DNA of 64,000 nucleotides, taken from assembly GCF_006345805.1 (NCBI RefSeq), contig NC_043006.1, forward strand, positions 65,224,001 through 65,288,000. Direction: 5' to 3'. The position numbers and the translations under genes were made by a program. Under the pieces are notes generated by a model. The model was given only the letters and a program-made list of their open reading frames with translations. It was not told where the DNA came from and did not search any database. Of this stretch, positions 12,301 to 62,042 are shown piece after piece (the first letter of the stretch is position 1; each line of letters begins with the position of its first letter). Origin of the DNA: Octopus sinensis (taxonomy: Eukaryota).

Positions 12301-12424
12301 GAAATGAATAACAATGATTTCGCAGACAGAACAAACTTAAATAAAAAGTTTGATTTTTTCGTTGAGTTTCGAAGAGAAGTTTCGAAATAAATTAATTAGC
12401 AGTTTCGATATTTATTAACTCTTG

Positions 12425-12430
12425 ATGACC
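12425..12430 (+). CDS. TUBA: Candidate coding part of alpha-tubulin exon 1 (ATG ACC, phase 0 donor)
   Basis: TAA CTC TTG ATG ACC|GTAAGT gives an in-frame upstream stop and a consensus donor, in the phase needed to join GGA GAA ATT at 17287 (MT-GEIVSINIG). I found no good ATG|GT donor elsewhere upstream. The Kozak context is weak, and the true exon 1 could lie elsewhere or outside the window. Confidence 0.4.
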
Positions 12431-17231: not shown

Positions 17232-17286
17232 AAAATACGTATATATAATATATAATAATATTTTGTTTTATTGTTTGATGTTTCAG

Positions 17287-17509
17287 GGAGAAATTGTGAG
17301 CATCAATATTGGACAAGCTGGCGTTCAGTTTGCTGAATCCTGTTGGGAATTGTATTGTCTTGAACATGGAGTTGAGCCTGATGGCAGACTAAAATGTAAC
17401 TGTTTTCACGAGCACAAAAACAATCGTCTTGACTCAATATTTTACGAAACAGAGAAATCTTTAATTGTTCCTCGTGCTATGTTTATTGACCTTGAACCAA
17501 CCGTAATTG
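17287..17509 (+). CDS. TUBA: Divergent alpha-tubulin exon 2 (residues 2-76)
   Basis: tttcag|GGA...ATT G|gtatgt, 223 nt. Encodes GEIVSINIGQAGVQ..CWELYCLEHG.EPDG...VPRAMFIDLEPTVID, colinear with alpha-tubulin residues 2-76. Same length and phase as vertebrate TUBA1A exon 2. Confidence 0.96.
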
Positions 17510-17820
17510 GTATGTAACGAAATGTTATGTGAAATTATGTTCAGATGATTAACTCATTTATTAACGACTTACTGATTGTCTTTGGTTTGATTTATTAGGC
17601 AGCAAATTGGCATAGTTGTTAAAGCATAGGATACATTACCTTACACTATTTGTTCCTATATGCTCACCTTCCTGTATCTGAGAGTTTGCTCTGGCACCTT
17701 ATCATTATCATTTTTACCTTCCCAACTACTCCCAATCACTCCTATATATTGTGTATGAACCAAGTACTACCTCCCTCCGTAATGAGACACTGATGTTTTT
17801 TCCTCTATCATACTTAACAC

Positions 17821-18357
17821 TTGGACACAATGCAGCAATGGATCATGAACTGGCAACTCAAGCTGGCTGTGGACAAATGTACCACCATGCATTTTGGGAG
17901 GAAAAACCCAGCGTCTACTTACTCCCTCCACAAAAAGTCTTCTTGTGAACGTGACCTGGGCATTATTGTCAACAGCAATTTGCATTGGACAAAACAGATT
18001 GCTGAAAGTGCCAAGAAGGTTGAGGGTGTCTTGGCATCACTTACCAAGTCCTTTGTGAGCCGCTCTCCGGCTATCTATTGGAGACTTTATATAGCTATGG
18101 TGTGGCCTCACCTGGAGTTTGCATTACCGGTCTGGAATCCCTATCTTACCCAGGATATTAATCGTCTGGAAATCGTTCAGCGACGTGCAACCAAGAGAAT
18201 ACCCTCCATCAGGCATTTGCCGTATTCTGAACGCCTTACTTCCTTGGGCATGGACACATTGAAACTCCGACGTCTGGCAGCTGACTTGGCAGACACCCAT
18301 AAAATTATTAACCATCTTACTAACAATAACTCTGAGCACCTTTTACATACCCCATAA
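17821..18357 (+). mobile_element. CR1/L2-type LINE reverse transcriptase C-terminal fragment in tubulin intron 2
   Basis: WQLKLAVDKC..MHFG, ERDLGIIV, LYIAMVWPHLEF...VWNPY, LEIVQRRATKRIP, YSERL..LG..TLKLRR motifs. Confidence 0.9.
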
Positions 18358-20094
18358 CTTAGCGATTTAGCAAAAGAGACTGATAGAATAAGTACTAGGC
18401 TTACAAAGAATAAGTCCTGGGGTTGATTTATTCAATTAAAGGCGGTGCTCCAGCATGGCCGCAGTCAAATGACTGAAATAAATAAAAGAATAAAAGAATA
18501 TATAAACATACACATATATACAGTTTCCATCTACCAAATGCACTCACAAGGCATTAGTCAGCTTATGGATTGCCCAGGGTGCCCCGCAATGAGACTGAAC
18601 CTGAAATCTTATAGAAGCAAAGCAAACTTCTAAACCACACAGCCATGTCTCCATTTTTGTGTCTCATAAAATAAATCATTGTTTTATTGTTGAGTATATC
18701 AATAATCAGTAATTGCTAAGCAGCAAGTGAATACACAATATTGATCATTAATGAACACAATATAACCAAATGACATTAACTAATATAATATAAAATAATT
18801 AATGACTTTCTACTGTATTGAGTATTTTCTTATTTTGTTTTTTTTATTTATGTTTTATTTTTTGTGTGATTATTTTTCATTTGTTTTTTTACTTGTTTCA
18901 GTCATTTGACTGTGACCATGCTGAGGCATCACCTAGAAGGGGTTCTCAGCATATGGCCCTTGGGGATCCACATAAAATTTTCTTATTAAAATTTATGAGC
19001 AATAGCAGGAGTGGCTGTGTGGTAAGAAGCTTGCTTACGAACTACACGGTTCCAGGTTCAGTCCCACTGCGTGTCACCCTGGGCAAGTGTCTTCTCCTAT
19101 AGTCTCAGGCTGACCAAAGCCTTCTGAGTGGATTTGATAGGCAGAAACTGAAAGGAGCCTGTTGTGTATATATAAGTATGTATATGTTTGTGTGTCTGTG
19201 TTTGTCCCCCCCCCACCCACTGCTTGATAACTGATGCTGGTGTGTTTATGTCCCTGTAACTTAGCAGCTCGGCAAAAGAGACTGATATAACTACTAGGCT
19301 TACAAAGAATAAGTCCTGGGGTCGATTTGTTCAACTAAAGGCGGTGCTCCTGCATGGCTGCAGTCAAATGACTGAAACAAATAAAAGAATAAAAGAATAA
19401 ATTGCTTATGCTTGTACAACACACCAAATATCTTAACAATTTTTTGATACAATTCCTAATAACATTTAATCTCTATTATTCAGATTAATCTGTCAAATGT
19501 AATACTTATTTATTCCAAATTGTTTTGTATTAATCCTTAATTATTTTGCAGCTTTGAGATCTCGATGATGTGGTTGTTTATTTTCAGAATAACATTGCAA
19601 TGTAAGTGTGAGAGGCCAGCTATGACCAGTTTGAGCATGACACATGTAGTATATCAGGGCCGGCTGGTTGAAGAGCTAATTAATAAAACATAATGACATA
19701 ATGGTATTTTTTTAAACATGGAATAGCTATGAAGGTCCTCTATTATCATGTCTGGTCATATTGCTTCAATAGTACAGTCAGTCTTTATAATGAAGTCCCA
19801 CAAGCTCTTGTAATTCTCATCTTCTATCATAGCCTTTGGTTCTTATTCACACCACATTTCAGTTGTTTTGAAGCCGCATACTTGGCTGACATCCCAATGT
19901 ACTCTTTTGCCTATACAGTCATGCCTGTGTCTGTGCCTGTACTCCTTTTGTACTCTTTTTGTGTTAGTATACAGCACTCACTCAAAACATGGTCGATACT
20001 CTTGTCTCCTAATATTATTTCTTTTTATTATTAACATTTTCTTTTTTGTAATCTTCTGTCTATTTTTTTTTTTACCATGCCATCATGATTTCAG

Positions 20095-20268
20095 ATGTTG
20101 TACGTTCCGGAAAATTCAAGAGCCTCTTTCATCCAAACACTTTTCTGTCTGGGAAAGAAGATGCTGCCAATAACTTTGCCCGTGGCTACTATGGGGTTGG
20201 CCGAGAAGCGTTAGAGGTTGCTGTTGAGAGAATAGAAAAACTTGCTGAAGACTGCGATCAGTTACAAG
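20095..20268 (+). CDS. TUBA: Divergent alpha-tubulin exon 3 (residues 76-134)
   Basis: tttcag|AT GTT GTA CGT...TTA CAA G|gtatct, 174 nt, phase 1 at both ends. Encodes DVVRSGKFKSLFHP...GKEDAANNFARG...CDQLQG. Confidence 0.96.
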
Positions 20269-25891: not shown

Positions 25892-26429
25892 TTATATATG
25901 CGTGTGTGTGTGTGTACATGTCTGTATGTATATGTATATCAGGTATATATGTAGTTTATCTTAAATATGATATAGAGTTTATATAGTATATTGAGTTGTT
26001 GTTGTTTAGTCTAGGATAGCCATATGTACCTGCCATGACCATCCTGTCTTTTATTCAGGCATAACATATCCAGGACAACATTATCCAATGTGCCCTCCCT
26101 AAGACAGTAGGGTGCAGTGTGATCCGAGGAAGAACTGGCTGTTGTATCCAGCAACTCAAATGACTACACAGTGACTCTCTCATTGGTTTGCTTTCTCCAG
26201 TGTTGATAATGTTTGTTTAGAAAGAATTGTTTGATGTTTTACCTTCCTCTTGTATTGTACTGTGTCTATCGTAATGACACTCTTCTCTTAACATTCCAGC
26301 CCGTGGTCAATATGTCAGGTAGAGAAGTACAGTTCACTGCTGGAAGTAGTGGAGGTATTCTGTAATTGCTGAATGTTTCAATAACTTGCAGTACTAAGGT
26401 GAACTTCTCCTGTATCCGCTGTAGATTAA

Positions 26430-26660
26430 TGAAACAGCAAAGGAGCTTCTATGTGGTCCCTCAAACAGCTATAAATAGCAACCAAATTTCCCCTCAAAAT
26501 ACACCCTACTGTCTTAAAAGGAAGACCAACACATTGGATAATATAATCTTGAATATGCTATCTGAAAAAAGAAGGCAAAAATCAGTGTAATGGTCAAGAT
26601 TTGAATGTCTTTGATCCTAAACCTGCTTGATCAAGGCTGACCTGGGGCTAAACAACAAGT
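26430..26660 (+). mobile_element. Third dispersed SINE-like family with (AAC)n-type tail (representative copy)
   Basis: Recurring body ..aaatagcagccaaat..cctcaaat.acaccctac..tcttaaa...cattggataat...ggctgacctggggctaaacaacaa. Diverged copies at about 7560-7940, 20900-21125, 23700-23830, 24650-25160, 26000-26150, 50290-50500 and 51150-51310. Confidence 0.65.
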
Positions 26661-26752: not shown

Positions 26753-27711
26753 GTTTCCTTATTTCTCACAGTTTAGGTGGCGGTACCGGTTCTGGTTTCA
26801 CAGCAATCCTAGCACAAGCTCTTAGTCAGCTCTTTCCAAAGAAATCAAAGATTAATTTCATTGTTTACCCGTCACCTCATTTATCGACAAGCATGGTGGA
26901 ACCATACAACTCACTGCTCACCACACACTGCACTATGGACCATTCCGACTGCAGTTTCCTTCTTGACAATGAAGCTATTTATAAAATCTGTCATAACAAG
27001 CTTAAAGTTTCACGTCCAATGTACAAAAACCTGAACCAGGTCATTTCTCATGTACTCAGCTCAATTACAACCCCACTACGTTTTGAAGGTTCCCTTCAAG
27101 TAAACCTTAGTGCATTTCAGACCAACCTGGTACCTTATCCTCGAATTCACTTTCCCCTGGCCACTTACTCTCCACTAATGTCAGACGTGAATATTTTACG
27201 CTCAGTGGTAAGCATTCAACATTTAACCAACCAGTGTTTTGCACCTCACAATCAAATGGTTAATTGTTCACCTCAATCTGGTAAATACATGGCATGTTGC
27301 CTCCTCTACAGAGGCGATGTTTGCCCAAGTAAGGTTAATTATGCATTGCAAAACATCAAGCGATCAAGCAAGATACATTTTGTTGACTGGTGTCCGACTG
27401 GATTCAAAATAGGCATCAACAGTCAACCCCCATTTTCAGTTCCTGGTAGTGACATAGGGAATTCTATTCGAGCTGTTTGCATGCTTAGTAATACAACAGC
27501 AATTCGTGAAGCCTGGGCACGTCTTGATTACAAATTTGATTTAATGTTTCGCAAAAAAGCTTTTGTTCATTGGTATATTTCTGAAGGCATGACATTAGAT
27601 GAATTTCTTGAGACACGAGAAAATATGGCTGCACTGGAAGAAGACTACAAGGAGGCTGGTGCTGACACAGTATTTGTGGATGAAGAGGAACAAGGAGTGG
27701 CAGAATATTGA
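26753..27711 (+). CDS. TUBA: Divergent alpha-tubulin exon 4 (residues 134-452, stop TGA)
   Basis: catttcag|GT TTC CTT. Contains the GGGTGSG signature, [57 protein letters not shown] and an acidic tail ending EEEQGVAEY. No frameshift or internal stop. Confidence 0.97.
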
Positions 27712-27988: not shown

Positions 27989-28000
27989 AATAAAAATAAA
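27989..28000 (+). terminator. Polyadenylation signal of the alpha-tubulin gene (tandem AATAAA)
   Basis: AATAAAAATAAA about 280 nt after the stop, followed by a T-rich downstream element (about 28011-28021). Confidence 0.7.
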
Positions 28001-32684: not shown

Positions 32685-33494
32685 GGCTTCTTTCAGTTTC
32701 TGTCTACCAAATCCACTCACAAGGCTTTGGTTGACCCGAGGCTATAGTAGAAGACACTTGCCCAAGGTGCTATGCAGTGGGACTGAACCTGGAACCATGT
32801 AGCTGGGAAGCAAACTTCTTACCACACAGCCACTCCTGTGCTCCCATTATTATTGTTATTATTGAGCTGGCGGAATCATTAGCGGTATTTTACCTATAGC
32901 TACATTCTGAGTCCTAATTTTGCCGAGGTCAACTTTGCCTTTCATCCTTTAAGGGGTCGATTAAATAAGTACCAGTTATGCACTGGGGTTAATGTAATCA
33001 CTTTAATCCCCTCCCCCAAGGTACCTTTGTGGAAAAAATTTGAAATCACTCTTATTATTATTATTATTAAGGCAGTGAGCTGGCAGAATTGTTAGCATGC
33101 TGGACAAAATACTTAGCGGTATTTCATCTGATGTAACATTCTGAGTTCAAATTCCGCTGAGGTCGACATTGCCTCGATATAATAAACTAGCCCCCTTCCC
33201 CCAAAATTTTCAAGGCTGTGTCCCTAGAGTAGAAATAATAATAATAATTATTGAATTGAACTGACACAATCATTAGAGTTTGGGGCAAAATATTTTGTGG
33301 TATTTATTCCTGCTGTTTGCATTCTGAGTTCAAATTGCTTCCAAGTTAACTTTGTCATTTTTATCCTTTTAGGTTGCTGAAATAATATACCAGTCATATA
33401 CTGAGGTGAATGGTATCAACTAACTCCCTCCCTTCCTTCCTCCAAATTACTGGCCATGTACCTAAATAATAATATACAATATAATACACAAGTG

Positions 33495-36827: not shown

Positions 36828-37072
36828 TCATGGCATCCAGTTGCCAAGCTGGTTACGTTCGAGATGTTTGTTGTTGTCAGGGATCTGGAAGCAGCCGACT
36901 GGGTAGACGCCGATTGTCCGGTTAAACAGGTTCAGATTGAAACTAGCGCAGCCGTTCAGTTGGGTCTTGTGTTCTTCGTGCACATTCACTTGGAATGTCA
37001 CATTGGAGAACTTCACACAGATCTCGGCAGCTTTAGTCTTTGAGCCGAGACAGATGAGTGGAGGATTTTCAG
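36828..37072 (-). CDS. DUF4773-type protein, terminal exon
   Basis: ttttcccaaacag|CT GAA AAT CCT CCA. Encodes AENPPLICLG...EICVKF...LNGCASF...VGCFQIP...NWMP*, the typical NPPxxC/C/GC/GCF end of DUF4773. Higher GC and CpG content than the flanks. Confidence 0.88.
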
Positions 37073-38439
37073 CTGTTTGGGAAAAAAAAAAACAGAAGAA
37101 AATAGAGTTAAAAGATAGAGTGAATAAATAACTAAACAGAGAGAGAGAGAGAAAGAGAGAGATAAGAGAGAGAGATAGAGAGAGAGAGAACTAGACAGAT
37201 CAACAGTTAGAAAGATAGACAAATGTAAACATGGAACTCGATCTCTAATAGTTTCTATAAATAAACATGATAAAATCTTTATGATTAGCACTCTTGTTTC
37301 ATTCTTGCTTGTTAATAACCTTTATCTTTTTATCTTCTGTTTGTTTAAGTCATTAGACTGTGGCCATACTGGGGGCACCGCCTTGAAGAAATTTGTAGTC
37401 GATGAATCGACACCAGTACTTAAAATACCAATACTGGTTGTCAAGCAGTGGTGGGGGACAAACACACACATAGATATATGACGGGCTTCTTTCAGTTTCC
37501 GTTGACCAAATCCACTCACAAGGCTTAGGTTGGCTTGAGGCTATAGTAGAAGATACTTGCCCAAGGTACATTCAACAAGATACTTGCCCAAGCCATTCAA
37601 CATTGGGCATAAAGCCACCCAGCTACATCTTTCCCGCTCAAATATTCCCCCCTTAGTAGTGAGAGCTTTTTATTTTTCCTGTTATTTTTCTGTCTTGCAA
37701 TCTTACAAGGCAACCTCCCTAGTGCCAATGGTACACACTCACACACACACAAAAAAAGCACTCAGGCACTCTGTAAAGTGGTTGTCATTAGGAAGGGCAT
37801 CCAGCTGAAATTATTCCAAAGCAGACATTGGAGCCCAACATTGCCTTGGAGTTCACCAGATCCTGTCAAACTGTTCAACCCATGCCAACATGGAAAAGGG
37901 ATATTAAATGGTGATGATTGATATATATATATAGGTGCAGGTGCAGCTGTGTGTGGTAAGTAGTTTGCTTAGCAACCACATGGTTCCGGGTTCAGTCTTA
38001 CCATGTGACTACTTGGGCAAGTGTCTTCTACTACAGCCTTGGGCTGACCAAAGCCTTGTGAGTGGATTTGGTAGACGGAAACTGAAAGAAGTCCATCATA
38101 TGTGTATGTGTGTGTTTGTCCCCCCAACATTGCTTGACAACCGATGCTGGTGTGTTTACATCCCTATAATGTAGTGCTTTGGTAAGAGAGACCAACAGAA
38201 TACCATAAAGACCAATGTAATTTACCGGTGAGTGTGTTACATTATAAGGCACAAAAAGAAAATGACTCTCCTCAGACACAACAGAATAATTTATGCACTT
38301 TTTCCACAAAATATAAAAATAAGCAATTACATGAGTAGATCATTTCTAGAATTTTTTTTGCAATTTTTTTTGTTGAAAAAAGACGTACAGAACATAAACG
38401 TTCGTACTGAAAGTTGACTCATTTAATGTCTGAATAGGT

Positions 38440-58680: not shown

Positions 58681-60236
58681 TATAGTTGGCATAAACCACA
58701 ACTGTACTATACTACACCATATCTTCAGATGATGGGATGGGTTACATATCACATTCTGTGTTGCAAATAAAATGCACAGATCTAAATCTAACATGCAGCT
58801 GTCCCAGAAACAGCTGTAAAGTACTACCAGCATCTTACCTTTCTATCATTTATGGATTTTTCACCTGCAATATCATGGACTTTACTTATTTACATAGGTC
58901 AACTCAACACTGAGAAATTATTTCTACCTCATCCAGACACGTACCCGTCAGCATCAAATCATCACTCTTCAGCCTCTAGCTTTTTCATGGTTTCCTGCTA
59001 TTAGAAAATTACTATTTTTGAATCTCACAACGTGAGATATTCAGCAACAGTACTTTGTAGTAAAGATTGTTTGCCAGCATAACATAGCATCCTGGTTTAG
59101 GACTAACGTTGCTGTAATTTAACCCCACGAGACATCGTCACCAGCTGGCTATACAACATAGTTCCCTGCTATATTTTTATATATCTGTCTTCAATATGTT
59201 AGAAATTGATTTGATACTTGGACATGGTCTGTTCATACTTTTTTCTATTACACCTATGCATGCATGTATGTATGTCCCTGACAGGTGCTATTTATCTGGG
59301 TTGGATTAGACCTGAGAACAATAGTGGCTAAGTGGTGGTTCCATACTCCTTAAAATTCTGGAATTCTTGAACCATAGTCCCACTACAAGATATTGCTTGA
59401 AGTCATGCCCAAGGTTACCTTGCATTGATGAGTGAGTGACCCTGCCTAGCTAGTGTCATAGCAACCTTCTACATGAGGAATACTCTGCCATAAAACCTGT
59501 AGTTTCACGTGATCATTGTTCATCTTTCTTCGGCCTGTCACTTGGTATTAATTACAGAGAGTCAGGGAGTGGCACTTGTGTGGTGCAAGCATTTATTATT
59601 ATATTCCAATAATGTACAGATGTCTTTTTCATTGGTCAACCTATCTACTGAAAGCGCTACGCTGATAGAAGAGTTGTGATGTGTGCAGACCTAATTGCAA
59701 GTACACAGTGCTTGCAACTTTCATTGGTCACTTACACTTCAAATCATGCAGACCTGCACTGGGGACTAAATAGTTATCTGGGAGGTCATGGATGGAAAAT
59801 CAGAAATGCCATTGAAAATATGAATGCACAAGAAGATAGCAACCATCTGTGATGATAGAGCAATCACCATGCATGCATGTATATATGTATGCATGTGTGT
59901 GTGTATATGTGTGTATGTATGTATGTATGTATGTGTGCATATGTTGTGTGTATGTAAGTGCATATATCCCTGTGAATGCTTCCATTCCACATTTTTACAT
60001 GAAAGTGTCTGAGCCCAAAATTGATGTTGACGTTCCTTGTTTGCAAATTGTCCTGTAGCTTTGCACTTTTGAAAGAACATGGAATCAAAAAAAATGCTTA
60101 ATCAAGGGTTAGCTACATGAAGAGTATCTGGCTGTGAAAATAATACCTCGTTAGTATACATTCATTTATGCTAACATGGAAAAACAACCATAAAAAAAAA
60201 ACAAAAAAACACCAAATGAACCCCAGTAGTACTTAC

Positions 60237-60805
60237 TTGAAATTTTGGTAAAAGTGTAAAATTTGCACATGCTTTCTCACTAAGGTGCAGTCTAGTCATG
60301 TTAATCCAAGCACAACAGACACACTGCACGTGAAAGCACCGACAGAAACTGTTCGTTAGCAAACTGGCCGCAGTACCATTTGACACTGTTTTAGTGGAGT
60401 TGTTTTGCAAAGGTATATTTTTTTTTATATCTCCTTTCGTTAATTTGACTTGGTTCAAGTTATGAGTGTCTTTCATGAAGTCTGCGAGATCTATCATCGT
60501 GATGTTCAGATCTAATTTGAAAGACTCGCTTATAAACTTTATCACTGGACGAGTCTTTATCACACCGATCGCTGACAGTTTTTCCAGTGTTTTGTTTTTT
60601 AATGTCTCTCCAATTTGTAATACTTTGTCTAATTGGCTTTTTTTTACGATGGTTTCATTTTTGGTGATATTTTTCAAGGGTGGTTTACTAGGTTTTGTGA
60701 ATTTGATTGGCACCTGTGATAATGATTTCGTGTGTACTGTTGTGGATATAATCTTTCGTAGTGTTATAATTTCTTTTATATGGTTCACATGCTCCTGGGT
60801 TTTAC
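60237..60805 (-). CDS. DUF4773-type cysteine-rich protein, large exon (Lys/Thr-rich extension plus start of domain)
   Basis: Minus-strand acceptor tctgatctattttcag|GT AAA ACC (phase 1) and donor TTT CAA|gtaagt (phase 0), 569 nt, open. Ends in CRCFHVQCVCCAWINMTRLHLSEKACANFTLLP, matching the C-x-C-x4-C-x-CC...C-x-N pattern I recall for DUF4773. Confidence 0.85.
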
Positions 60806-62042
60806 CTGAAAATAGATCAGAATAGAGAGAAATCACCAAAAGGATTTCTAAATTTTTGTCTGTTGTTACATCATACAAAACAAAAAGCTGTTACATCATA
60901 CAGAGCAAGAGAACATCTACATGTGTTTCTATGTACATGTGCGTATGTGTGTGTAGTGTCAATTTGGTAAAAGTATACCGGACTTCTTTTATTTTTTATT
61001 TGTTTTAGTCATACAAATATTTACATACACATACATATATATACATACACACAGATATACATTTATATCTACACATAGACACACATGCATATCAGACACA
61101 CAGTATTCTCAGTAGGAAAAAAAACCTTTCATTTATTAAGAAACAACTGTTGCCATTCAAAGTCTGTCATCAGATGACCTTTATGAGCTTTGGGTGAAAA
61201 AAACCCAACAAACTCATCATTTGTGATTAGAAATAAAGCATTTCTCGACACAATGGACATAACTCTTTAAAGTGTGCACCAACATAAATGATAAATTATA
61301 GAATTTTAATTCATTAAGAGACATGGGTATGGCTGTGTGGTTAAGAAATTTACTTTGCAGCCACATGGTTTCGGGTTCAGTCCCATTGCACATCACCATC
61401 GGCAAGAGTCATCTACTATGGTCCTGGGCCAACCAACGTTCAATGCCTTGGGAGTGAATTTGGTAGAGGAAAATTGAATATATGAAACCTGTTGTGTGTG
61501 TATCATCATCATCATCGTTTAATATCCGCTTTCCATGCTGGCATGGGTTTGACGGTTTGATTGAGGACTGGTGAGCCAGAGGCTGCACCAGGCTCAATCT
61601 GATTGTGTGTATCTATATATATATATATACACACGATCCCATATAGACAAAATATCAGTGGCAGGCAGTCTCCTTGATAATCTTAGTAGCTTCTATACTG
61701 AAGTAGAGACAACATGTTCTTTGTCTATCTCCTTAAGTTCTTGGAAATTTTAGGCATAATTATACTAATGTGTCCATCTGTTCTAATTTAATTAAATTCT
61801 ATGTCTTTGTGCAGCTGAAGATTGCTCTACATTTTAAATTGATGTAATGATTACATTGCTCATTTAAATGGAGTTACATGAAAAGATTGTACTGCATTAC
61901 CTCTGGATATCCTTGTGCTTATTTTGATATATATCATCATCATCATCATCATCATTTAGCGTCCGCTTTCCATGCTAGCATGGGTTGGACGGTTCAGCTG
62001 GGGTCTGGGAAGCCAGAAGGCAGCACCAGGCCCAATCTGATC

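Follow-up and report, generated by a model that had tools for sequence, protein, structure and literature searches.

Hydrolysis of guanosine triphosphate (GTP) triggered by E254 of alpha-tubulin is the basis of microtubule dynamic instability, and it is the T7 loop and helix H8 (T7/H8) of an incoming alpha-tubulin that complete the GTPase site of the beta-tubulin below. So far, only engineered mutants and analogues of GTP have been used to study the loss of E254, which is the cause of severe disease in patients. The E254A, E254N, and E254Q mutants have been engineered in human alpha-1B (PDB 7SJ7-7SJA; Roostalu 2020, LaFrance 2022, Estevez-Gallego 2025). E254A tubulin retains GTP, nucleates strongly, and forms microtubules that are stable for hours, never undergo catastrophe, and are bound by EB proteins along their whole length (PMC7018511), E254D slows hydrolysis and shows intermediate behavior (PMC7018511), and E254Q and E254N are likewise hydrolysis-deficient (PMC11893814). 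Among natural proteins, the coccidian alpha3-tubulin (Toxoplasma gondii, with homologs in Hammondia, Neospora, Besnoitia, and Cystoisospora) carries T and H or Q in place of D251 and E254, respectively (Morrissette et al. 2023, PMC10056924), and sequence analysis alone led to the prediction that it activates the GTPase little or not at all and stabilizes the polymer (PMC10056924). Our literature search combining D251/E254 with isotype found no natural precedent other than this protein. Here we describe an alpha-tubulin gene of Octopus sinensis, located in a 64,000-nucleotide stretch of the genome (contig NC_043006.1, positions 65,224,001 to 65,288,000 of the forward strand; hereafter the window) and annotated as "tubulin alpha-4 chain-like" (XP_036362633.1, 453 amino acids), in which N249, D251, and E254 are all replaced. 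We favor, with a probability of roughly 0.55, the view that the gene encodes a functional and fast-evolving alpha isotype, specific to coleoid cephalopods, which polymerizes and is unable to activate GTP hydrolysis on the beta-tubulin below. The sequence state, the integrity of the gene, its orthology, the purifying selection, and the pattern of retained and altered surfaces are observed; we infer the loss of hydrolysis (by analogy with E254A, E254Q, and E254N), co-polymerization, and any cellular role.

The T7 loop and the start of H8, DGALNVDLTEFQ in canonical alpha-tubulins, are encoded on the forward strand at positions 27085–27120 of the window. Direct reading of the codons (GAA GGT TCC CTT CAA GTA AAC CTT AGT GCA TTT CAG) places glutamine (27097–27099), asparagine (27103–27105), and alanine (27112–27114) at canonical N249, D251, and E254, in agreement with a preliminary description of the window that had pointed out these substitutions. 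A canonical alpha-tubulin probe run by tblastn gave three coding blocks whose alignment is ungapped from residue 3 to about residue 448, and the three codons therefore correspond to canonical positions 249, 251, and 254. The open reading frame is intact and colinear with canonical alpha-tubulins, as had been claimed; the annotated protein has 453 residues rather than the 452 that had been counted, and it begins M-T-G-E-I, so that its own numbering is the canonical one plus one (Q250, N252, and A255). The segment G-S-L-Q-V-N-L-S-A departs from the activating motif G-x-x-N-x-D-x-x-E. This motif defines a catalytic role rather than family membership, and the protein appears from its sequence to be an alpha-tubulin with a dead activating site.

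The substitutions are rare as well as real. In the O. sinensis genome assembly searched (2.72 Gb), the gene is one of 22 alpha loci, with a nearest paralog of 63% identity, and the other loci (21/21) read RFDG[A/S]LNVDLTEFQ at T7. A family of such genes in Octopus was thereby ruled out, and the gene is single-copy. Positions 249/251/254 are N/D/E in 191 of 198 alpha-tubulin matches with an alignable T7 region from across eukaryotes, and the seven exceptions comprise five octopod-clade sequences, one cuttlefish ortholog (P0133), and one misaligned fused protein. Among 178 positions that are at least 97% invariant in the canonical alpha panel, the O. sinensis protein retains 150 and differs at 28, and the chance that the three named residues are all included among the latter is about 0.004. 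By count, T7/H8 is not enriched in substitutions (3/15 vs 25/163 elsewhere in the O. sinensis protein); to judge from these counts, the signal is the identity of the changed residues and not their number. The T7 codons are the same in the independent assembly of O. bimaculoides, which rules out an assembly error, and O. vulgaris shares the T7 peptide, as does a further octopod represented by a Logan contig.

In all other respects the protein is squarely an alpha-tubulin, as judged by Pfam, PDB sequence matches, and an AlphaFold2 model. It matches PF00091 with 198 bits (cut-off 33) and PF03953 with 147 bits (cut-off 26.6), and its identity is 57–61% to alpha-tubulins of animals, fungi, and protists (about 59% to canonical alpha) and 35–38% to the beta loci of the same genome. 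Alpha chains in the PDB match at E about 1e-190, the best sequence match being 7SJ9, the human alpha-1B carrying E254A. An AlphaFold2 model built from 142 sequences has a mean predicted local distance difference test score (pLDDT) of 90.6, a predicted template modeling (TM) score of 0.91, and TM scores of 0.92–0.94 to solved alpha-tubulin chains; an earlier model built from only 40 sequences was poor (pLDDT 52.8). The alignment is colinear over residues 357–372, showing no deletion of the alpha-specific S9-S10 insertion. The comparison with beta-tubulin is also informative for T7/H8. The T7/H8 of beta-tubulin faces the GTP of alpha-tubulin without a catalytic glutamate (Lys254), hence the GTP in the non-exchangeable site (N-site) is never hydrolyzed. 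The beta-tubulin loci of O. sinensis read NADLRKL in this region. The cephalopod alpha in effect has a non-catalytic T7/H8 as beta does, but it is alpha by every other criterion (59% identity to alpha vs about 35–38% to beta).

Orthologs were found in both octopods and cuttlefishes. Two protein searches gave only Octopus and Argonauta sequences above background; the Logan fragment P0133 (R249/D251/S254), which sits in a 90% cluster containing CAE1261237.1 of Acanthosepion pharaonis, then revealed cuttlefish orthologs, and the idea of an octopus-only gene was rejected. Residues 249/251/254 are Q/N/A in three Octopus species and one octopod Logan contig, Q/N/T in Argonauta hians (segment EGPLQVNFHTLM), and R/D/S in the cuttlefish Acanthosepion (Sepia) pharaonis and a related ENA contig. 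The residue at canonical 254 is thus non-acidic (Ala, Thr, or Ser) in all orthologs. A search of cephalopod orthologs with scoring of these three positions had been set beforehand as a check in the preliminary description, and its outcome favors that description, as the orthologs also lack E254. Identity to the O. sinensis protein is 97% in O. bimaculoides and 71% in Argonauta hians, both of which share its exon structure and its downstream DUF4773 neighbor on the opposite strand. In both the cuttlefish locus and the related ENA contig, the coding sequence is divided into three exons, with boundaries as in Octopus, and encodes an intact protein starting (M)REII. A phase-1 intron at codon 134/135 is common to the Octopus, Argonauta, and cuttlefish orthologs and is absent from the canonical O. 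sinensis alpha loci L002–L021, and thus marks this gene lineage. The gastropod and bivalve proteomes represented among the search matches showed no evident ortholog.

In maximum-likelihood trees, the five orthologs form one clade, within which the branching follows the species tree. The support is 100/99 in the last-exon tree and 99/99 at full length with 17 further long-branch alpha-like sequences included. Long-branch attraction as the cause of the grouping was rejected, since the clade persists at 99/99 in the presence of these sequences and the shared intron is independent evidence. Codon 254 is GCA in Octopus, ACA in Argonauta, and TCC in cuttlefish, each one step apart, and codon 249 is CAA or CGA in the clade. 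The pattern at codon 254 is consistent with one ancestral replacement of E by A and later drift between small residues. The shared intron, the 99/99 clade, and the octopus–Argonauta synteny lead us to infer that E254 and N249 were probably lost before the octopus–cuttlefish split, which is of the order of 200–300 million years old by published clocks. D251N is octopod-specific, and the cuttlefish orthologs retain both D251 and R2; in the simplest history, the losses of D251 and R2 would have come later, in the octopod lineage.

The pattern of substitution indicates a gene that is kept by selection. The ratio of nonsynonymous to synonymous substitution rates (dN/dS) is 0.16–0.17 between O. sinensis and O. 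bimaculoides (dS 0.08–0.09), 0.135–0.15 between Octopus and Argonauta (dS about 1.2), and 0.12–0.135 between the two cuttlefish-lineage sequences (dS about 0.5). These values point to clear purifying selection, though far weaker than that on canonical alpha-tubulins, given that the canonical branches of the tree are tens of times shorter. In every species examined, the frames are open and the introns have GT..AG splice sites. Alternatively, the gene could be a duplicate in decay or neutral drift that still lacks a stop codon, or an artefact of annotation or assembly; in favor of this are its evolution, far faster than that of canonical alpha-tubulins, the lack of expression evidence among the public contigs found, all of which are genomic, and the putative status of the first exon. 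Such an explanation is strongly disfavored and has very little probability, because at least six independent assemblies or contigs from the octopus and cuttlefish lineages have intact frames, dN/dS is 0.12–0.19 at three depths, 122 of the 178 invariant positions are retained in all five orthologs, and splice sites and intron positions are conserved. A genuine alpha pseudogene of this genome has a very different appearance: locus L025 (contig C29:555551-557347) has several stops and frameshifts, and yet retains NVDLTEFQ. The intact frames in six sources, the dN/dS values, and the contrast with this locus rule out a pseudogene, as the preliminary description had judged.

The distribution of conserved and changed positions bears on what the protein does. 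Retention of the invariant positions in all five orthologs is complete or nearly so in T5 (3/3), T6/H6 (7/7), S9-S10 (7/7), H10-S9 (13/14, including T349 and K352), T3 (5/6), and S4 with T4 (11/13), and is low in T7 with H8 (8/15), H7 (5/13), H3 (3/8), and H11'-H12 (15/25). T1, T2, T3 (DAANN), T4 (GGGTGSG), T5, T6/H6, and N228 are conserved. The N-site residues GQAG, D69/E71, DAANN, GGGTGSG, E183, N206, Y224, and N228 are all present in O. sinensis, so that the N-site residues and the C-terminal Tyr listed in the preliminary description are all accounted for; the sole N-site exceptions in the clade are N101S and Y224L in Argonauta and Y224F in cuttlefish. The segment from F255 to P263 following the lost glutamate (including F255-Q256-T257-N258) and residues T349 and K352 are retained in the four Octopus and cuttlefish-lineage sequences. 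The tail is of normal length, and its terminal EY is kept in all five orthologs. Positions changed in all five are Y103F, H107Y, E155Q, G162P/K, L167I, V235L, S241P, N249Q/R, E254A/T/S, H283R, K304N, K326S, G410S/A, E414T/I, E415L/M, A421T/S, and D424N. In addition, K40 is replaced by Cys, Tyr, or Phe across the clade (Cys in O. sinensis, codon 17401–17403 in exon 2), and Y282 by Leu. On the forward strand of the window, the M-loop codons TTA CGC (27196–27201) encode Leu-Arg at the lateral-contact residues Y282-H283, where H283R is fixed in the five orthologs, and the H11'-H12 codons ACA TTA (27592–27597) encode Thr-Leu at E414-E415 on the kinesin-contact surface. In canonical alpha-tubulin, E415 forms a conserved salt bridge with kinesins that couples binding to ATPase activation (PMC13254124).

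These changes raise the possibility of a non-lattice alpha-like tubulin, which would bind beta-tubulin or a dedicated partner without building the walls of ordinary microtubules; its role might be that of a seed or template for nucleation, of part of a specialized structure (centriole, basal body, doublet junction, or manchette), or of a buffer of free beta-tubulin, and the catalytic loss would then be a by-product of dispensable dynamic instability. The lateral contacts are changed in all five orthologs (Y282L, H283R, and the H1-S2 loop), five of the eight invariant H3 positions are altered in at least one ortholog, and the surface for motors and microtubule-associated proteins is altered (E414T, E415L/M, and D424N). 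The stem of the clade in the last-exon tree is very long (1.16 substitutions per site vs about 0.01–0.1 for canonical alpha branches), and the extreme nucleation efficiency of E254A tubulin (PMC7018511) would suit a seed. A candidate partner also exists in the same genome, namely a divergent, intronless beta-tubulin without an acidic tail (locus L026, contig C2:74227884-74229149). This locus has an open frame, ends EYQHYETVH, and carries GGGSGGG for GGGTGSG and GQGSASNNW for GQSGAGNNW; it could be a specialized partner or a retrogene. On the other side, longitudinal elements that serve only polymerization are constrained: H10-S9 retains 13/14 positions, and F255–P263, T349, and K352 are kept in the Octopus and cuttlefish-lineage sequences. 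All five orthologs also retain the terminal EY used in the tyrosination cycle, a cycle acting on polymer and dimer alike. We consider a role outside the lattice to be rather unlikely.

The residues around the catalytic site bear on a further alternative, in which hydrolysis is slowed or rerouted rather than abolished, through D251 and R2 (in cuttlefish), E245, beta residues, or the intrinsic GTPase of beta-tubulin. A-to-I (adenosine-to-inosine) RNA editing is common in coleoids. Editing could recode AAC (N251, 27103) to GAC (Asp) in Octopus, and since such an event would mimic an Asp codon, a complementary DNA reading Asp251 would be ambiguous. Slowed hydrolysis is also consistent with the retention of D251, R2, and K352 in the cuttlefish orthologs, with the intermediate behavior of E254D (PMC7018511), and with the slow hydrolysis of GTP by free dimers without the help of alpha (PMC10319017). 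However, no acidic residue is found at or beside position 254 in any ortholog, residues 243–258 of the Octopus protein contain only E245 as an acidic residue, and human tubulin is deficient in hydrolysis whether 254 is A, Q, or N. Editing cannot make Glu from GCA, ACA, or TCC, and a restoration of catalysis by editing was thus rejected: A-to-I could give N251D, but never Glu254. Retarded or rerouted hydrolysis seems quite improbable to us.

In our preferred interpretation, that of a polymerizing isotype unable to activate hydrolysis, the protein would fold, bind GTP at its own non-exchangeable site, pair with beta-tubulin, and stack longitudinally; dimerization and stacking are suggested by the conservation of the intradimer and longitudinal interfaces. 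It has lost the T7/H8 residues that are inserted into the exchangeable site of the beta-tubulin beneath, so that GTP on the beta-tubulin below an incorporated isotype would be hydrolyzed very slowly or never, and the interdimer contact would stay in the stable GTP state. Of the four alpha residues placed in the active site by a published quantum-mechanical model (R2, D251, E254, and K352; PMC10319017), the Octopus protein keeps only K352. At low dosage, sparse rescue-promoting GTP-like sites would be expected, and at high dosage, easily nucleated microtubules without catastrophe. By analogy with the engineered mutants, the isotype probably builds or seeds unusually stable microtubules. Because the lateral-contact residues, K40, and E414/E415 are changed, isotype-rich microtubules would be structurally and biochemically distinct tracks, with altered lateral contacts (Y282L, H283R, and H1-S2), no K40 acetylation, and a weaker kinesin footprint.

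Several points weigh against this interpretation. About 40% of positions differ from canonical alpha, and the behavior of the E254A single mutant is for that reason not simply transferable. The changes in the M-loop and H1-S2 could block entry into ordinary lattices. Cuttlefishes retain D251 and R2, so that residual activity is possible there, and the further changes near the site in Argonauta (L252F, F255L, Q256M, and Y224L) hint at weaker constraint in that lineage. Every Logan and ENA contig found for the octopus and cuttlefish clusters includes intron sequence and is genomic, so that no transcript, protein, or tissue evidence came to light, and an accession search of the literature found no paper citing this gene. 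Finally, the loss of E254 is harmful elsewhere. The yeast tub1 D252A/E255A mutations were reportedly dominant lethal in the work of Anders and Botstein in 2001. Heterozygous E254A/Q/K/G in human TUBA4A leads to severe early myopathy (PMC12262762). This myo-tubulinopathy affects the same residue, with the identical E254A in one patient (PMC12262762), and indicates that a hydrolysis-dead alpha is dangerous unless restricted or compensated. Unlike the dominant TUBA4A and tub1 mutations, which are deleterious in broadly used isotypes, the cephalopod state is fixed under purifying selection in a dedicated paralog. We conjecture that expression of the isotype is probably restricted or dosed.

A bolder form of the preferred interpretation is offered tentatively. 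The gene may encode a coleoid "GTP-lock" alpha-tubulin, kept since before the octopus–cuttlefish split, which would fix the expanded lattice of the GTP state into chosen microtubules or sites; with K40 and the kinesin-contact residue E415 absent and the M-loop remodeled, it would define a genetically encoded lattice state, which EB-type and other conformation-sensing proteins would read differently and kinesins would use poorly. Among animals, no case of this kind would precede it.

Comparison with the described systems shows what is shared and what is particular to the cephalopod protein. Like the engineered alpha-1B mutants, it has a small or neutral residue for Glu254, in Octopus exactly Ala, and GTP retention at the interdimer site and hyperstable, easily nucleated microtubules would be expected. 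The hydrolysis block and hyperstability of E254A, which the preliminary description had invoked, are confirmed in the literature (PMC7018511). Unlike the mutants, the cephalopod protein is natural and conserved, also lacks N249 (and in octopods D251 and R2), and departs from canonical alpha at about 40% of positions, among them K40, E415, and the M-loop. The interpretation in the preliminary description is partly supported: the catalytic residues are gone, but a natural E254A-type alpha-tubulin is too simple a view in that K40, H283, K326, E414, and E415 are also lost and identity to canonical alpha is about 59%, and the uses it suggested (in sperm or neurons, as GTP islands, or as a cap) are hypothetical. 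The coccidian alpha3 resembles it as a natural alpha isotype without D251 and E254 (N and A or T in octopods, although cuttlefishes keep D251) and may be compared with it at the MREI autoregulatory motif, which has an insertion there (MPREI) and reads MTGEI in Octopus with its putative exon 1. In contrast, the Glu at a shifted position (253) and the C-terminal tail of 48 residues in the coccidian protein have no equivalent in the cephalopod gene, where the tail is of normal length and ends EY and where cuttlefishes keep MREI and D251. Given the taxa, the two almost certainly arose independently and represent convergence.

Other alpha-like sequences have also lost the catalytic residue. In a profile search of 1.84 billion cluster representatives (50% identity), about 29 alpha-like representatives among the best 150, which were inspected, lack Asp or Glu at 254. 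Residues 249/251/254 are S/N/A in the lung fluke Paragonimus westermani (KAF8569058.1) and N/D/Q, D/S/Q, and H/N/S in unnamed sequences. The loss of the catalytic Glu appears to be recurrent in divergent side-branch alpha paralogs, and more widespread than published work would suggest. These sequences show no specific grouping with the cephalopod clade in the tree. The cephalopod gene, the coccidian alpha3, the trematode alpha-like protein, and many unnamed sequences together outline a recurrent and barely described route of tubulin evolution, and our finding is a new, well-supported animal variant of a barely characterized kind rather than a new category. If a conserved natural animal isotype without E254 is confirmed, cells would set microtubule stability and lattice state by the choice of tubulin gene, and the protein would provide a physiological reagent for the study of the GTP lattice, of GTP islands and rescue, of recognition by EB proteins and motors, and of nucleation. 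Old and conserved, the feature lends itself to experiment and bears directly on the control of microtubules by the GTP state.

The gene lies on the forward strand of the window in four coding exons, and the spliced product is identical to XP_036362633.1. Coding exon 1 (12425–12430, 6 nt) is ATG ACC, encoding Met-Thr, followed by the donor GTAAGT (ATGACC/GTAAGT). This exon is the source of the MT N-terminus of XP_036362633.1, and the motif TTAACTCTTGATGACCGTAAGTGG is identical in O. bimaculoides; the 6-nt exon is inferred from the annotation and this identity. Coding exon 2 (17287–17509, GEIVSINIGQAGVQ...DLEPTVI), delimited by tblastn and AG/GT sites, covers canonical residues 2–75 and the first base of codon 76 and contains the T1 loop, the T2 loop, and the divergent H1-S2 loop. 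Coding exon 3 (20095–20268, DVVRSG...DAANNFARGYY...DCDQLQG) covers residues 76–134 with the T3 loop and H3. Coding exon 4 (26753–27711, 959 nt, with the stop TGA at 27709–27711) covers residue 135 to the end, matches Pfam PF00091 and PF03953, and contains GGGTGSG, T5, T6, H7, T7/H8, the M-loop, H10-S9, H11-H12, and the tail ending EY. The preliminary description's canonical splice sites (3/3 introns GT..AG) and polyadenylation signal were also found, the latter as two overlapping AATAAA motifs at 27989 and 27995 (27989–28000, forward strand), about 280 nt past the stop and recognized by motif match only.

The choice of the N-terminus matters, as both R2 and the MRE(C/I) tag have roles in catalysis and autoregulation. 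An in-frame ATG is found 9 nt upstream of exon 2 (ATG TTT CAG/GGA, 17278–17286), and an unspliced 5' end from 17278 would yield MFQGEIV vs MTGEIV when spliced. The O. vulgaris gene model uses an upstream-extended start of the same kind. In the stretch of about 70 nt 5' of the putative start codon (12355–12424), AGTTTCGA(A) occurs three times, and these copies are kept in O. bimaculoides. An RFX X-box motif, a hint of ciliary expression, was searched for near the putative promoter, and none was found.

The canonical alpha loci of O. sinensis, about 21 in number, are a large alpha-tubulin expansion in Octopus. Many are in tandem, at 51.16–51.30 Mb and 68.13–68.19 Mb of contig C10 and at 58.66–58.69 Mb of contig C6, and others lie on several unplaced contigs. 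Loci L006, L014, L016, L017, and L022 are apparently without the codon 75/76 intron. In the window, exons of the DUF4773-domain gene lie downstream on the reverse strand at 36831–37073 and 60171–60890, convergent with the tubulin gene. Intron 2 holds an open frame of 179 amino acids (17818–18357, forward strand) that resembles the C-terminal part of a non-LTR (long terminal repeat) retrotransposon reverse transcriptase and has no Pfam match. In intron 3, an element of about 500 bp (26061–26561) with imperfect inverted repeats at its ends (32 nt with 81% and 23 nt with 87% complementarity) may be an insertion resembling a miniature inverted-repeat transposable element. A short repeat translating as DTCP..AVGLNLEP, at 19047–19091 (reverse strand) and 32753–32797 (forward strand), gave spurious weak tblastn matches, and the pair is probably a dispersed repeat.

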